A stretch of DNA of 64,000 nt from the sequence record NC_048016.1; one strand, 5' to 3'. Below, piece after piece: positions 534 to 4,922 of this stretch. The notes under the pieces were generated by a model that searched no databases, was not told the origin of the DNA, and was given only the letters and a program-made list of their open reading frames with translations. A program made the position numbers and the translations under genes. The first letter of the stretch is position 1, and the number at the start of each line of letters is the position of its first letter.

Positions 534-1364
534 ATGAGAAAGTTACTCATTGGGGTATTGGCATTTTTAAGCTTTTCGGTCATGGCGGGCGAGAACGTCA
601 TCATCACCACAGGCCAGCAGGGTCTGACGTATAACTCCGTGTACGGGGTGAACTTAGCCGGTGCGTTGGCCGAGTTCGGTAACAAGTCGCAGGTCGTCCC
701 GTCCAAAGGGTCGCTGGATAACCTCGACAAAGTCGCGGCGAATGAAGCACAGGTTGGCTTCACGCAGGCAGATGCATTCCAGTTCTGGCGCGCTAAGCAC
801 CCGAACGAAGCGCAGAACGTAGACATCGTTGGCCAGTTAGCCCGCGAATGTGTCTGGGTAGCTGTGAAGCAGGATGGCAAAATTGGTAAAGCCGAAGAGC
901 TGACTAACGGTGCGAAGATTGCGGTCGGTGAACCCGATAGTGGCTCGTACGCCAGTTGGCAGTATCTGCAGCAACTGGTAAAAGAATACGGTAAAGCTGA
1001 GACCTACGCCAAAGGCGGTATCCGTTCACTGGCCAAAGTGGCAACCGGTGAATACGATGCATTCCTGTGGGTGTCGGCTCCGGGCAAACCCAATAAGTTT
1101 CTGGATGCGGTCAACCAAGACGGCTCTGGCTTAAAACTGATTGATATGTCCACGTGGAACGTGAACGACAAACTGCCGAACGGCCAGTCTGTGTACACCA
1201 AAGAGTCTGCTAAGGTGAATAACAACATCTGGAATAGCTCGGTGGATGTTCCGTGCACCACGACGCTCGTTGTTGCCAACAACAACAGTAGCGAAGACCT
1301 GCTTGAAGCGGTGTCGACGATTCTGCTGAAGAATCAGTCCCGTGTCCTCGGCACTGCGAAATAG
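534..1364 (+). CDS. TAXI-family TRAP transporter solute-binding protein (276 aa, signal peptide)
   Basis: Signal peptide MRKLLIGVLAFLSFSVMA-G. Motifs ITTGQQGLTY, SKGSLDNL..V...AQVGFTQADA and KIAVGEPDSGSYA match TAXI SBPs. Confidence 0.85.
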   Translation: MRKLLIGVLAFLSFSVMAGENVIITTGQQGLTYNSVYGVNLAGALAEFGNKSQVVPSKGSLDNLDKVAANEAQVGFTQADAFQFWRAKHPNEAQNVDIVGQLARECVWVAVKQDGKIGKAEELTNGAKIAVGEPDSGSYASWQYLQQLVKEYGKAETYAKGGIRSLAKVATGEYDAFLWVSAPGKPNKFLDAVNQDGSGLKLIDMSTWNVNDKLPNGQSVYTKESAKVNNNIWNSSVDVPCTTTLVVANNNSSEDLLEAVSTILLKNQSRVLGTAK

Positions 1365-1379
1365 TTATCTGACAATACG

Positions 1380-1951
1380 GCCGATGTGGGCTGATATCCC
1401 CATCGCGACGGAACGCGAGATTGCTGTTATCGCGAAGCGTAGACCGCAAGCAGACCCGTAAGCCTTGCGCAGCCGGGACACACAAAGCACTATTGCTCCG
1501 GCGGTAGGTGTCCCGTCCGTTCACAACTTATTCGATGAGCGAAACATGATAAGAGCCTTTGTGCAACATGCTCTTGGCCTTCTTCGGAATGTCATCAGCA
1601 ACCTGCGCATCTGGAGGCTCGATACTTATTGGTTATCAGGCTGTGGGACTGTACGCCATAAACCTTTTTCAGGACGCAAGTCCTCAACTCCGGCGCACGT
1701 CGTGAAGGACGAAGGTCAAGCACCGGCCCATTAAGCCGACTCGCTGACAAAAGCAACCTTCACCCACAATTTGAAAATAACTGATGGGATTGAGTTCCCA
1801 GATGCGAAAGAGTAGCTGTGTGCTACTGAGCACCTCCCCGGGACTGCTAAGCAGCGGGGGAATAGGGCCAACAGGAAAGTAATCGGAGGGGATGGCTCGA
1901 GAGACATTAGCCCGCGGGCACTGTTACTCACGACCTGCATCCCCTCCTGTT
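1380..1951 (+). ncRNA. Candidate large structured ncRNA (or 2-3 adjacent RNAs)
   Basis: No credible CDS. Helices include 1606-1614/1798-1806, 1885-1894/1938-1947 and AGGAC-GCAA-GTCCT, plus a loop-to-downstream pseudoknot. Confidence 0.6.
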
Positions 1952-1975
1952 TAAAGATGAGTTAGTATATATGTT

Positions 1976-2051
1976 GCAGGCATAGCTCAGTTGGTAGAGC
2001 ATCTGATTTCCAATCAGAGGGTCGTCAGTTCGAACCTGACTGTCTGCTCCA
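1976..2051 (+). tRNA. tRNA-Gly(TCC)
   Basis: Acceptor GCAGGCA/TGTCTGC, anticodon arm TCTGA-TTTCCAA-TCAGA, T-loop TTCGAAC, U73, encoded CCA. Confidence 0.96.
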
Positions 2052-2150
2052 GAAATGTAATTACAGGTTTACACTGTATTATGTACAAGACATGTGCGCT
2101 TAGCTAAACTGTTGCAAAAATAACAGGTTATCTCAGTACATATGTGCAAT

Positions 2151-2233
2151 GGTTGTGTCACGTTGGCGTGAGTTGGGTTTACGGCAGGCAAACGGACGTA
2201 AGCTCTTCGTGGTTCAATTCCACAGCACAGCCC
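2151..2233 (+). ncRNA. tRNA-like RNA without a canonical anticodon arm
   Basis: Acceptor GGTTGTG/CACAGCC, D-like TCACG-TTGG-CGTGA, T-arm GTGG-TTCAATT-CCAC. A 9-bp stem with a 13-nt loop replaces the anticodon arm. No CCA. Confidence 0.6.
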
Positions 2234-2255
2234 TCTTGTTATGTAAAAGAATTCT

Positions 2256-2340
2256 GGCGGGTTACTCAAGCGGCAACGAGAGCAGACTGTAAATCTGTTG
2301 ACTTCGGTCTTCGGTGGTTCGAGTCCACCACACGCCACCA
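2256..2340 (+). tRNA. tRNA-Tyr(GTA)
   Basis: Anticodon arm GCAGA-CTGTAAA-TCTGT, long variable arm, TTCGAGT, CCA. G5-A68 mismatch in the acceptor. Confidence 0.94.
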
Positions 2341-2345
2341 GTTAT

Positions 2346-2420
2346 ACACCCATCGTCTAGCGGTTAGGACCGCTGCCTTTCGAGCAGTTAACCGGGGTTC
2401 AAATCCCCGTGGGTGTACCA
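2346..2420 (+). tRNA. tRNA-Glu(TTC) copy 1
   Basis: Acceptor ACACCCA/TGGGTGT, anticodon arm GCTGC-CTTTCGA-GCAGT, CCA. Confidence 0.93.
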
Positions 2421-2423
2421 AAC

Positions 2424-2499
2424 ATTCCCGTCATCTAGTTGGTAAGGATACGACACTTTCACTGTCGGTACACGAGTTCGAGTCTCGTCGGGAATACCA
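2424..2499 (+). tRNA. tRNA-Glu(TTC) copy 2
   Basis: Acceptor ATTCCCG/CGGGAAT, anticodon arm CGACA-CTTTCAC-TGTCG, CCA. Confidence 0.94.
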
Positions 2500-2509
2500 A
2501 ACACAAGAC

Positions 2510-2601
2510 CGTAACCCTGCGGTGTGGTTAGTCGCCACTACTAGCGGTTACGCGATGCCCACTGCTGCGGGGTGTGTGATAGTGAGGTGGTTGACCCCAC
2601 C
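2510..2601 (+). ncRNA. Structured inter-tRNA element with two T-arm-like hairpins
   Basis: CGTAACC/GGTTACG helix enclosing GTGG-TTAGTCG-CCAC, plus GGTGG-TTGACC-CCACC. Confidence 0.4.
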
Positions 2602-2622
2602 AAGCGAGCAGCGAGCAATTTT

Positions 2623-2698
2623 AGGGAAGTAGTTCAATTGGTAGAGCGTCGGTCTCCAAAACCGGTTGTTGGAGGTTCGAGTCCTCTCTTCCCTGCCA
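2623..2698 (+). tRNA. tRNA-Trp(CCA)
   Basis: Acceptor AGGGAAG/CTTCCCT, anticodon arm TCGGT-CTCCAAA-ACCGG, G73, CCA. Confidence 0.96.
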
Positions 2699-2704
2699 AA
2701 CAGT

Positions 2705-2781
2705 AGGACTGTAGCTCAGACGGTTAGAGTGCCGCCCTGTCACGGCGGAGGTCGCGGGTTCGAAACCCGTCAGTCCTGCCA
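2705..2781 (+). tRNA. tRNA-Asp(GTC)
   Basis: Acceptor AGGACTG/CAGTCCT, anticodon arm CCGCC-CTGTCAC-GGCGG, CCA. Confidence 0.96.
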
Positions 2782-2786
2782 TATCT

Positions 2787-2876
2787 GGAGAATTGGATGA
2801 GTGGCTTAAGTCGCTCCCCTGCTAAGGGAGTGTATCCGAAAGGGTACCGTTGGTTCGAATCCAACATTCTCCGCCA
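2787..2876 (+). tRNA. tRNA-Ser(GCT)
   Basis: Acceptor GGAGAAT/ATTCTCC, anticodon arm CTCCC-CTGCTAA-GGGAG, long variable arm, CCA. Confidence 0.96.
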
Positions 2877-2882
2877 TTACAA

Positions 2883-3038
2883 TGACACCCGCACCTCAAA
2901 ACCCTGGGTATTGCACCCAGAAAAAGAGTGCTGGCAGCCAATAAAGGCATCCGTTAGTAACCGTAGCCTTCGGGCGTAGATGGTGAAGACCGCCAAGTGC
3001 AGCCTTTAGAACTCCGTGGGATTCGGAGGGGTGTCACC
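2883..3038 (+). ncRNA. ~155-nt tRNA-framed structured RNA
   Basis: Terminal stem TGACACCC/GGGTGTCA stacked on CTCCG-TGGGATT-CGGAG. Internal helices CTGGGT/ACCCAG, TAAAGGC/GCCTTTA and GCC-TTCG-GGC. Confidence 0.65.
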
Positions 3039-3064
3039 TACACACGTTAAAAGGATCATCCTCC

Positions 3065-3160
3065 TTGGGCGAAACCAATGGGCGCGCGGGGTGTATAGTC
3101 TGGGGCAAAGCAATCCCAGATGAGTCGTCTGACGTTAACTCGTCAGGGGGCAAGCGGCCA
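3065..3160 (+). ncRNA. Second structured domain between tRNA-Ser and the pseudo-tRNA
   Basis: Hairpins TTGG-GCGAAA-CCAA, TCTGGG/CCCAGA and CTGACG-TTAACT-CGTCAG; ends in GGCCA. Confidence 0.4.
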
Positions 3161-3169
3161 CACAATTTC

Positions 3170-3245
3170 TCAACGGTAAGCAAAACTGTGATGCACTGTG
3201 CTCGCGAACAGATTAGGTGGGTTAGAATCCCATAACCGTTGACCC
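3170..3245 (+). pseudogene. Degenerate tRNA or tRNA-like element, identity unassignable
   Basis: TCAACGGT/ACCGTTGA acceptor, T-arm GTGGG-TTAGAAT-CCCAT, CTGT/ACAG stem with 8-nt loop GCTCGCGA. D-loop lacks GG; ends in CCC. Confidence 0.6.
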
Positions 3246-3251
3246 TTTTAT

Positions 3252-3327
3252 TGGTGATTAGTTCAGTCGGTAGAACAGTGGACTGTTAATCCATATGTCG
3301 CAGGTTCGATTCCTGCATCACCAGCCA
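3252..3327 (+). tRNA. tRNA-Asn(GTT)
   Basis: Acceptor TGGTGAT/ATCACCA, anticodon arm GTGGA-CTGTTAA-TCCAT, CCA. Confidence 0.96.
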
Positions 3328-3332
3328 CCTTT

Positions 3333-3757
3333 GCTCTGAGATAACTGTGAATGGCATTCCGGAAAAATTTCATTCAACCTAACACGTGCGGTCGTCTCAG
3401 CGCAAAACCCTTTCGGGATAGTGAACCCTGCAGACCGGTGTGCTTGCATATCGGGTGTCCGCTATCCCGGACCTAATACAGACAGAAGCCGAATAGGTTT
3501 TTCTACTGCACATACGCCCAGAGCCATTACGGGCTTTTGTCTGTACCAAATAGGGCATGGAGAGAGGTTGGTGATAATAGGCCGCCCTGTCTGTGTCCGT
3601 CCCCGTTTGTCGGGTAGGTAGTTCGCTTCCCCCCAAGGATGCTAGCTGTGTCAGCCTGCCCGGCAATCCAAATTAGCGCGCTTGCTAATGAGTGTCTGAA
3701 CCTGACCCGTCGGATACTGCCCAGGTAGTTAGAAAGACTTCGACCACACCAGGGTAC
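3333..3757 (+). ncRNA. Candidate ~430-450-nt multi-domain structured ncRNA
   Basis: No credible CDS. 14-bp helix 3477-3490/3532-3545, CGGGATAG/CTATCCCG, CTGAGA/TCTCAG, GTGTCCG/CGGATAC, GGGTAGG/CCTGCCC. Confidence 0.62.
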
Positions 3758-3798
3758 CCCCTCTCCGTTTTGGAGAGGGGAATACTCTATTTTATTTC
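3758..3798 (+). terminator. Terminator closing the RNA island
   Basis: CCCCTCTCC-GTTTT-GGAGAGGGG followed by an AT/U-rich tail. Confidence 0.7.
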
Positions 3799-3802
3799 GG
3801 AT

Positions 3803-3819
3803 AGATATTATCTCTGTGA
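3803..3819 (+). promoter_or_regulatory. Putative early promoter motif AGATATTAT-N5-TGA
   Basis: One of 8 copies of the motif in the window. Confidence 0.7.
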
Positions 3820-3866
3820 ACGAAGATGTATTCACTTTAATCGACTGATCACAGAGGCCAGTAAAA

Positions 3867-4922
3867 ATGAAAAATCGTCACTTCAGTAATACCCGCAACG
3901 GTGCACCTAAGATTGATGCACTGAGCAGCTTGCAAGGCTTAGGCTACACAGCACTCCAGGCAAAGAATATTCGCATGTGGCTTCCTCGCCAGTTCGGCAT
4001 GGGTGGTCTGGCATTACCTCGGGCTAACTACGAGTTCTGGAAAGCCTACGAGATTGTCAAGGACATGCAGCAGTACCGCAAGACCAATGCCCTCTCTTTA
4101 CAATTCGCGGGCTACGCAAAGGGCCGTACCGTATTCCAGTTCACGGATAACGAGTTCTTGGAGTACCGCAGTCCGACACTGCACTCAACGGTGTGGTCAT
4201 TGGAGTTTGTGCGTCACTTTGGTAACGGCCTGTGGCGTAGTAGCACGGATGCCTTTGAAGGTGGTCCACGCCAGCTTGAGTACATCGGGGATAACCTGCG
4301 TTTGAAGCGTGGCGAGTTGGCAACCCGTATCGTGGAGATGGAAGCCACACAGACGGTGTACGACCTTAACGCAGACGGCGGCTACTTACCCCGTAACCTC
4401 GAACGCTACACCGAGAACGCGCGTGAGTCCATCGCTACGCTGTTCACCATGGCAGCGGTGTGTCACAGTAACCTGACGCTGAAAAGCGGCTGGAACCTCA
4501 ACCCAGAGCGTCTGTGTTTCACCAAGTACCAGCACTGCGATTCACATCGCTTAGCGTTTGCCATCGGTAAACTCTGTGAGCTTTACCCACAGAAGGAGCA
4601 GTCGATTCGCAGTCACGTGATTCGGATTATGCAGACCCCGAACCACATTCAACTGATGAACGATGACTTTATCCCCGGGGTGTATCATGAAGGTGGAAAC
4701 GTACTCGCGGTGGAACAACCAAATTTCGTTCTCAGTCCCGCCGGGAGTTTTATTCCGAGTGCCTTACAAGGAAGTCTGCCTGCCTTCTTTGTGAACCTAC
4801 CTTTCGCGTACGGGCCAAGCACCACCATCAACAAGCCGATGTTGTTTGTACCGAAAGAGTTGCGGGACGCCCACACCGAAGAAGAGTGGATTCTCGGTGC
4901 TCGCTTGTTCTTTAAACTGTAA
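3867..4922 (+). CDS. Hypothetical protein (351 aa)
   Basis: Long ORF bounded by the promoter motif and a terminator; no family recognised. Confidence 0.9.
   Translation: MKNRHFSNTRNGAPKIDALSSLQGLGYTALQAKNIRMWLPRQFGMGGLALPRANYEFWKAYEIVKDMQQYRKTNALSLQFAGYAKGRTVFQFTDNEFLEYRSPTLHSTVWSLEFVRHFGNGLWRSSTDAFEGGPRQLEYIGDNLRLKRGELATRIVEMEATQTVYDLNADGGYLPRNLERYTENARESIATLFTMAAVCHSNLTLKSGWNLNPERLCFTKYQHCDSHRLAFAIGKLCELYPQKEQSIRSHVIRIMQTPNHIQLMNDDFIPGVYHEGGNVLAVEQPNFVLSPAGSFIPSALQGSLPAFFVNLPFAYGPSTTINKPMLFVPKELRDAHTEEEWILGARLFFKL

Follow-up and report, generated by a model that had tools for sequence, protein, structure and literature searches.

The sequence analysed here, hereafter the window, comprises bases 1-64000 of the genome of the Erwinia jumbo phage Wellington (100% identical to NC_048016/MH426724), and the element in question occupies positions 1382-1947, between a gene for a TAXI/TRAP-type solute receptor (534-1364) and tRNA-Gly (1976-2051), which opens the Wellington cluster of eight tRNA genes. 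The public record places two hypothetical genes in this region, gp4 (1342-1461, plus strand) and gp5 (1731-1940, minus strand), and both overlap covarying RNA helices, in the case of gp4 those of P1-P3 in the 5' domain described below. The minus-strand frame of gp5 is present only in Wellington and Kwan, and both annotations are probably erroneous. An open reading frame (ORF) at 1546-1734, on the other hand, is left unannotated in Wellington, Kwan and most of their relatives. An earlier note, made from the letters of the sequence, had described the region as an ORF-free structured RNA of ~570 nucleotides (nt) upstream of tRNA-Gly; the RNA is indeed structured, conserved and correctly placed, but it is not free of ORFs, as the frame 1546-1734 is open in 20 of 20 sequences. 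A literature search found no description of the RNA 1382-1947, and we rate it as a structured phage RNA of a new family, in which a putative small gene is embedded.

Four genera have a homologous unit of ~480-560 nt at the head of their tRNA clusters, with sequence identity down to ~60%. It is carried in full by members of Wellingtonvirus (Wellington, Kwan, pEa_SNUABM_11), Erskinevirus (Stratton/phiEaH2, Asesino), Machinavirus (Huxley, Machina, pSal-SNUABM-04, pEa_4, pEa_9, ChrisDB, Caitlin) and Seoulvirus (SPN3US, JN03, SPAsTU, pEa_29), as well as by several uncultured contigs. The gene on its 5' side is mostly that of the TAXI receptor, in Seoulvirus it is a small gene, and the ChrisDB genome has no TAXI gene at all; the unit therefore travels with the tRNA cluster and not with TAXI. 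Our alignment represents about ten lineages, all of them from one phage clade. An independent lineage, L085, was found via the 3' module only, and it has the 5' domain, an open ORF of 63 codons and the long-range duplex. Folding energy had been named in the earlier note as a check on its proposal, and the region 1365-1975 of Wellington, folded as a single sequence, is more stable than dinucleotide shuffles (z = -4.6 for the plus strand, z = -3.4 for the minus strand); the abundance of G-U pairs identifies the plus strand as the folded one. The features of the element are collected in Table 1.

Table 1. Structural and coding features of the element in Wellington, in order of position (compensatory, pairs with compensatory changes among the homologues; cells, cells of the alignment)
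Feature	Coordinates	Strand	Remarks
P1 hairpin, stem	1382-1390/1398-1405	+	CGATGTGGG/CCCCATCG, one bulged U; 7 of 9 pairs compensatory (23 sequences)
P1 loop	1391-1397	+	CUGAUAU; 5' strand of pseudoknot PK1
PK1 pseudoknot	1391-1396/1529-1534	+	3 of 6 pairs compensatory; 88% of cells paired
P2	1407-1412/1516-1521	+	6-bp helix closing the multi-helix core; covaries
P3 variable hairpin	1414-1434	+	missing in several lineages; insertion region in alignments A3, A6 and A7
P4a	1437-1438/1472-1473	+	GC/GC; both pairs covary
P4	1445-1451/1463-1469	+	6 of 7 pairs compensatory; 98% of cells paired
P4 loop	1452-1462	+	AGACCCGUAAG, conserved
P5 and P5b	1475-1481/1508-1514 and 1490-1493/1504-1507	+	8 of 10 pairs compensatory; 99-100% of cells paired
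P5/P5b internal loop	1482-1489	+	ACAAAGCA, invariant
Small ORF	1546-1734	+	62 amino acids, MIRAFVQHALGLL...GQAPAH; open in all homologues; matches phrog_26199
Long-range helix, 5' strand	1606-1647	+	inside the ORF, codons ~21-34, with both Trp codons
GNRA hairpin	1671-1684	+	AGGAC-GCAA-GUCCU, inside the ORF; group variants GAGAC/GUCUC and AGGGC/GCCCU
Stop-codon hairpin	1719-1745	+	TAA (1732-1734) in the loop; 100% of cells paired; one compensatory pair, GC to AU
Long-range helix, 3' strand	1763-1806	+	holds the invariant AUGGGAUUGAGUUCCCAG (AUGGGAUURAGUUCCCAG)
Hairpin with conserved loop	1810-1831	+	loop CUGUGUG; 4 of 6 pairs compensatory
Variable hairpin module	1833-1866	+	A3 columns 488-545
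3' terminal long hairpin	1885-1947	+	outer helix, 7 of 16 pairs compensatory, 97% of cells paired

The 5' domain (1382-1534) was studied in an alignment of 23 sequences guided by a covariance model, in which 93.0% of the cells form standard pairs, compared with 73.5% in shuffles and at most 44% in slid controls, where the partners were moved by 1-3 columns; the shuffle controls ignore phylogeny, while the slid-partner controls are phylogeny-aware. Compensatory changes occur at 31 of the 39 pairs, and the covariation score is 0.62 (0.23 in shuffled alignments); none of 500 shuffles attained the observed value. A covariance model of the domain built from 21 sequences, the E-values of which are rough, finds a single copy in the window (1377-1553, 122 bits) and also recovers copies outside its training set, in L085 (124 bits), Ea35-70 (95 bits) and AH06 (87 bits). 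The domain occurs in one copy per genome.

The fold deduced from these data is a compact pseudoknotted domain with four helices. The closing helix of its core, P2, pairs in all 19 sequences, given an alignment shift by one column, and does so with very different sequences, such as GACGGA/UCCGUU, GCCGGU/ACCGGU and UACGGU/ACCGUA; CGUAAU/AUUACG and GUAAU/AUUAC occur in the stand-alone copies discussed below. The pseudoknot PK1, formed by the loop of P1 with a strand downstream of the core, is maintained in a similar manner (CUGAUA/UAUUCG, UUGAUG/CAUUAG, CUGGUA/UACUCG, CUGAUU/GAUCAG, CCGAUC/GAUUCG), and in contig L062 the loop and its partner are both wholly changed (UUAGCA/UGCUAG). The 3' strand of PK1 is always located ~10-25 nt from the start of the ORF; in Wellington it abuts a purine-rich, Shine-Dalgarno-like tract, GAUGAGCG (1534-1541), and in some lineages it overlaps the ribosome-binding site (RBS). 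Inspection of the sequences also suggests that the 3' strand of PK1 might instead pair with the Shine-Dalgarno-like tract in a weak local hairpin (CUUA...UGAG, CUCA...UGAG, AUUA...UGAU), as a possible alternative state.

The ORF that follows is the 3'-terminal 189 nt of a longer frame, 1465-1734, that exists only in the Wellington group. Its reading frame, which passes through an invariant TGG, is free of stop codons in the 19 aligned homologues (55-64 codons) and in L085, where the N-terminal sequence is very different, whereas each of the other five frames has ~2-3 stops; by shuffling, the probability of an open frame is ~0.04-0.10 per lineage. Every sequence has an in-frame ATG 17-24 codons 5' of the Trp codon, with a purine-rich tract in front of it. 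The lengths of gap runs are multiples of three in 3 of 4 cases within the ORF, as against 3 of 19 and 5 of 24 in the flanks, and the ratio of nonsynonymous to synonymous substitution rates (dN/dS) for close pairs is 0.23-0.61, with the synonymous sites being also under RNA-pairing constraint. Conservation is higher in the non-coding flanks than in the ORF itself. The earlier note had set a reading frame and the RNA pairings against each other as alternatives, and the homologues keep both.

The product of the ORF is matched by phrog_26199 (E-values from 1e-49 to 0.025), a family built from Machinavirus annotations, and by no Pfam family. Beyond this clade it has virtually no relatives: only two clusters turned up among 5.8 billion proteins, and among 1.84 billion representatives there are only about four clusters of small proteins, all of this clade, the three other matches being long proteins aligned over short stretches. 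AlphaFold2 predicts a helix at residues 2-30 (predicted local distance difference test, pLDDT, 70-85) and a disordered tail. The predicted peptide combines an N-terminal amphipathic α-helix, rich in Arg and other charged residues, with a disordered basic tail, and it has no transmembrane segment.

Besides the adjacency of PK1 to its start, the ORF is linked to the sequence downstream by a long-range helix, the 5' strand of which lies within the coding sequence and the 3' strand beyond the stop codon. In Wellington the duplex of the two strands calculated by RNAduplex has an energy of -50.6 kcal/mol (z = -7.1), and a nearly continuous duplex is formed in all 11 lineages tested (-32 to -51 kcal/mol, z from -3.4 to -8.6 versus shuffled partners); the value for L085 is -46.9 kcal/mol (z = -4.6). 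RNAalifold predicts the helix independently in two subgroups. In a fixed register, 86% of the cells pair, with two compensatory pairs (A3 columns 264/467 and 276/453) and nine pairs with one-sided, wobble-compatible changes, and for the long-range helix and the 3' part taken together 92% of the cells are paired and 18 of the 55 pairs are compensatory. The 3' strand may alternatively fold into a local hairpin (1785-1800, -7.2 kcal/mol). The hairpin is invariant while the partner strand on the ORF side drifts, which points to a second constraint.

Most of the individual helices listed in the earlier note are borne out by covariation in the homologues, namely the stem of P1, GGGACAC/GTGTCCC (P5), AGTAGC/GCTACT (within the hairpin at 1810-1831), the 10-bp helix 1885-1894/1938-1947 and the 9-bp helix 1606-1614/1798-1806, which is the outer end of the longer duplex just described. 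The hairpin AGGAC-GCAA-GTCCT covaries within the Wellington/Erskine group, and other lineages have GNRA-capped counterparts nearby (CCC-GYRA-GGG or CUC-GUGA-GAG). The pairing AAGAGC/GCTCTT and the TTCG hairpin, in the 5' third of the ORF, hold for the Wellington group but are not conserved outside it.

The 3' domain shows signs of exchange and rearrangement. The hairpin module at 1833-1866 exists in at least three unrelated versions, the distribution of which is independent of phylogeny (Asesino has the version of pSal-SNUABM-04 and JN03, Stratton that of Wellington); this suggests that the modules have been exchanged by recombination. The terminal module of most relatives measures ~66 nt, hardly varies and has internal loops rich in purines (GGUGCUUGGAG...CUCAGAAGAAGAAGUCCAUC), and Wellington and Kwan alone carry a diverged copy of this hairpin. 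These two phages also lack a small ORF (MAGTALMVV...; L002:1980-2126) that is found 3' of the terminal hairpin in pEa_SNUABM_11 and in UViG_3300042923. The diverged hairpin and the missing ORF suggest a recent rearrangement between the element and tRNA-Gly. In the remaining interval, a TATATATG motif at 1966-1973, the sole TATATG in the first 9 kb, stops 3 nt short of tRNA-Gly, and the motif is kept 40-100 nt 3' of the element in all relatives. The core of the late promoters of phage phiKZ is TATG, with G as the start site (PMC4666361), and by this comparison the motif is a probable promoter for the array of tRNA genes, in which case the element would stop upstream of it.

In four other settings the 5' domain stands without the ORF and the 3' domain. 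One is that of SA002 and pEa_SNUABM_48 (288-294 kb), where it is located directly after tRNA-Tyr and ~190 nt before a gp1-like gene. It is present in the Agricanvirus phages Ea35-70, Deimos-Minion, RAY, AH06 and others, and in a 287-kb metagenomic contig; in this contig and in Ea35-70 a short hairpin comes next, then an intrinsic-terminator-like hairpin with a U-tract, and there is no conserved ORF. In contig L062 a Shine-Dalgarno sequence comes immediately after it, followed by a different ORF of 55 codons, a homologue of which is placed after the 3' hairpin in pEa_SNUABM_11 and in one uncultured contig. Scans of metagenome and genome collections with degenerate patterns of the 5' domain yielded as true additions near-duplicates, L062 and the 287-kb contig. 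Most of the matches were due to chance, among them those to a conserved protein-coding stretch in Nitrosomonas, Gallionella and Burkholderiales (L063, L070, L071, L074, L082 and others), which were rejected.

The element does not belong to any RNA family in Rfam. Searches with gathering-score and permissive settings covered the window and ten related loci. Cmscan, run at the gathering score over the 64-kb window, at E <= 10 over positions 1200-4000 and at E <= 5 over seven relatives, returned only tRNAs and noise, and none of the 4227 families of Rfam 15 matched the element, in keeping with the failure of the earlier note to place it in a known family. The hits comprised tRNAs, chance plastid and mascRNA matches on tRNAs, and sub-threshold YrlA and hammerhead matches elsewhere. 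Membership in the ROOL and GOLLD families was rejected, as their covariance models give no match in the window or the relatives. A group I or group II intron is likewise not supported, with no Rfam intron match and with the element placed between genes and not within one, and there is no Rfam match to RNase P RNA. A transfer-messenger RNA, brought to mind by the 5' GGGCUGAU and a T-arm-like hairpin, was rejected on the negative results of ARAGORN and Rfam, the conserved ATG and the lack of acceptor-stem pairing of the ends. A replication origin or RNA primer was rejected, with no switch of GC skew near 1-4 kb. As to leader-peptide attenuation sensing the phage tRNAs, inspection of the ORF revealed no enrichment in the residues that they decode, and such phages are unlikely to couple transcription to translation. 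Neither sigma-70 promoters nor intrinsic terminators were found above shuffled expectation. The tRNA cluster of phage T4 encodes the stable RNAs C and D, structured non-tRNA RNAs of ~140 nt without an ORF; they resemble the element in being structured non-tRNA RNAs of a phage tRNA cluster, but are not known to be related to it in sequence and lack its ORF.

Several other signals of structured RNA were noticed in the window and in related phages. The ORF-free gap at 3328-3866, after tRNA-Asn and before gp14, folds with -198.7 kcal/mol (z = -6.5 versus shuffles) and may be another structured RNA. The ORF-free gap at 2877-3251, between tRNA-Ser and tRNA-Asn, has a fold z of -2.6 and contains a weak, sub-threshold tRNA-like Rfam match of 20 bits (3172-3241), possibly a degenerate tRNA. 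The hairpin GGTGGGC-TTCG-GCCCACC at 255-272, directly 3' of gp1, also follows the gp1-like gene of Seoulvirus phages, just upstream of the element, and may be a conserved signal for the end or the processing of a transcript. Sub-threshold matches to YrlA (Y RNA-like; 32-45 bits compared with a gathering score of 69) were found at L087:1817-1880, L088:1431-1495, L034:198-262 and L028:572-689. In Ea35-70, AH06 and the 287-kb contig they lie ~550-650 nt 5' of the solitary 5' domain, in SA002 ~1.8 kb 5' of it, and they may be tRNA-like or Y-like RNAs of these jumbo phages. In Salmonella phage SA002 there is a sub-threshold match to the type III hammerhead ribozyme (L028:3880-3932, 30.5 bits, E = 0.008), and a CUGAUGAG...CGAAAC core that Rfam did not report was seen by eye in Ea35-70, in a long ORF-free stretch 3' of the 5' domain (L087, ~3000-3100).

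Our preferred explanation, to which we give an even chance, is that the region 1382-1947 is a single transcript acting both as a folded RNA and as an mRNA, that is, a structured, translation-gated gene for a small protein, or dual-function RNA. The 5' domain would then be a modular cis-acting leader, whether as a sensor, as a binding site for a protein or through stabilisation, which would set the access of ribosomes to the ORF, because the 3' strand of PK1 touches or overlaps the Shine-Dalgarno-like tract, and which might also control termination where a terminator follows in the Agricanvirus phages. Translation of the ORF would have to melt the long-range helix, and the melted helix would free its invariant 3' segment to form the alternative hairpin, so that translation and RNA conformation would be coupled, with the amphipathic, basic-tailed peptide made in the process. 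In having a conserved fold of a few hundred nucleotides that encodes a small peptide, the element is similar to known dual-function RNAs (Staphylococcus RNAIII/hld, SgrS/SgrT, SR1/SR1P). It differs from them in that its ORF is longer (55-64 codons) and lies itself within the conserved fold, in being encoded by a phage, and in that no trans target or base-pairing seed was identified.

A number of observations weigh against this explanation. The Shine-Dalgarno-like tract is weak in Wellington, and dN/dS of the ORF is moderate overall and rises to ~0.8-0.9 for distant pairs. Every strongly conserved residue of the peptide is encoded by nucleotides under RNA constraint, the Trp codons lying in the long-range helix and GQAPAH in the stop-codon hairpin, and selection on the protein itself is therefore weakly shown. 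The alternative hairpin at 1785-1800 is invariant and hence has no support from covariation, and the ends of the putative RNA were placed from conservation alone. The genes 3' of the 5' domain in its different contexts have no recognisable function in common, and where the 5' domain stands alone and no conserved ORF follows it, a trans-acting small RNA is as fitting an explanation as a leader. Moreover, the phages considered here are related to nucleus-forming jumbo phages, in which transcription and translation are separated; classical attenuation therefore cannot apply.

The coincidence of peptide and RNA constraints would be accounted for if the element were mainly a stable, ornate non-coding RNA, akin to the large ROOL, GOLLD or OLE-type RNAs near phage tRNAs and forming a folded particle or a scaffold for proteins or RNA, with the ORF being secondary or kept open by the transit of ribosomes or by constraints on the RNA, which we regard as a serious but rather unlikely alternative. 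Covarying helices and GNRA-capped hairpins do extend through the ORF, the flanks are better conserved than the coding part, the full-length fold is more stable than its shuffles, and the element adjoins tRNA genes, as do many ROOL and GOLLD RNAs (PMC5737381; bioRxiv 10.1101/2024.12.08.627333). The earlier note had pointed to the same two families; the likeness holds for size (~570 nt) and proximity to tRNA genes, as well as for the conserved multi-helix architecture in phages, the GNRA loops and the long-range helices, but neither Rfam model scores, and the element differs from both in its conserved, translated-looking ORF, its stand-alone 5' domain and its confinement to one clade of enterobacterial jumbo phages. 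Against a mainly non-coding role stand the frame that is open in every sequence while all others contain stops, the conserved ATG with its purine tract, the gap runs that respect the frame in the ORF only (3 of 4), and the variable N-terminal third, which stays open and helix-like although the RNA hairpins there are not conserved.

A more specific proposal concerns the 5' domain. It might be a new class of sensing RNA, either a riboswitch or a leader that senses a tRNA or a protein, and restricted to SPN3US- and Ea35-70-related jumbo phages of enterobacteria. Such an RNA would gate translation of the small ORF in the Wellington type and termination in the Agricanvirus type, the ORF and the 3' domain serving as a translation-driven switch whose refolded 3' part would have its own function near the tRNA cluster; we put this forward with considerable doubt. 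The domain resembles pseudoknotted riboswitches and leaders in its compact size of 150-175 nt, its invariant unpaired nucleotides and the pseudoknot strand at the RBS, and terminator-coupled leaders in preceding a terminator hairpin in other phages. Unlike riboswitches, it has no Rfam riboswitch match, no shared function of downstream genes and a single copy per genome; it is called aptamer-like here for its architecture and position.

It is in our view quite unlikely that the three parts are independent neighbours, with a stand-alone small RNA (the 5' domain) followed by an ordinary small gene and then by a terminator structure or at least one small RNA on the 3' side. The solitary 5' domains of the Agricanvirus and SA002-like phages and of L062 could be read in this way, particularly where an intrinsic-terminator-like hairpin comes next, as in Ea35-70 and the 287-kb contig, and in the pEa4/ChrisDB/Caitlin lineage the TATATATG motif, which contains the TATG of the phiKZ late core (PMC4666361), overlaps the start of the ORF. 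However, a conserved duplex of ~40 bp ties the ORF to the 3' domain, the spacing between PK1 and the ORF start is kept everywhere, and the three parts always occur together in the lineages with the ORF, approximately nine in number.

The burial of a small coding region in covarying long-range pairings, in a transcript of ~400-570 nt comparable in size to hok mRNA, is reminiscent of type I toxin-antitoxin loci of the hok/sok type, in which a toxic peptide would be encoded by a stable, translationally inert, highly folded mRNA that processing activates. We consider such a locus highly improbable, since the peptide lacks a transmembrane segment and is not of the membrane-toxin type, being an amphipathic, Arg-rich helix with a basic disordered tail, the minus strand showed neither a conserved antisense gene nor a conserved promoter or ORF, no mok-like overlapping frame or fold-back pairing of the 5' and 3' ends was found, and Pfam offers no support. 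Finally, an ordinary small gene in only apparently structured surroundings, or a decayed gene remnant, has the annotation of gp4 and gp5 in its favour but is hardly tenable, given that gp5 is confined to Wellington and Kwan, gp4 coincides with covarying P1-P3 and the coding part is less conserved than its flanks; the massive compensatory covariation outside the ORF already contradicts it.

For the annotation of these phages, the analysis means that gp4 and gp5 of Wellington are probably not genes, and that 1546-1734 is probably the actual small gene, hitherto unannotated in Wellington, Kwan and most relatives. Large conserved structured RNAs are rare in phages and mostly unexplained, and several of them lie beside tRNA genes. 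The element described here has unusually strong covariation and joins three features that seldom occur together, namely a conserved small ORF, the long-range helix in which this ORF is buried and a pseudoknotted, modular domain, and it is present in the genetically tractable model jumbo phage SPN3US as well as in many Erwinia phages. It lends itself to testing how translation and RNA conformation may be coupled, in phages with relatives in which transcription and translation take place apart.

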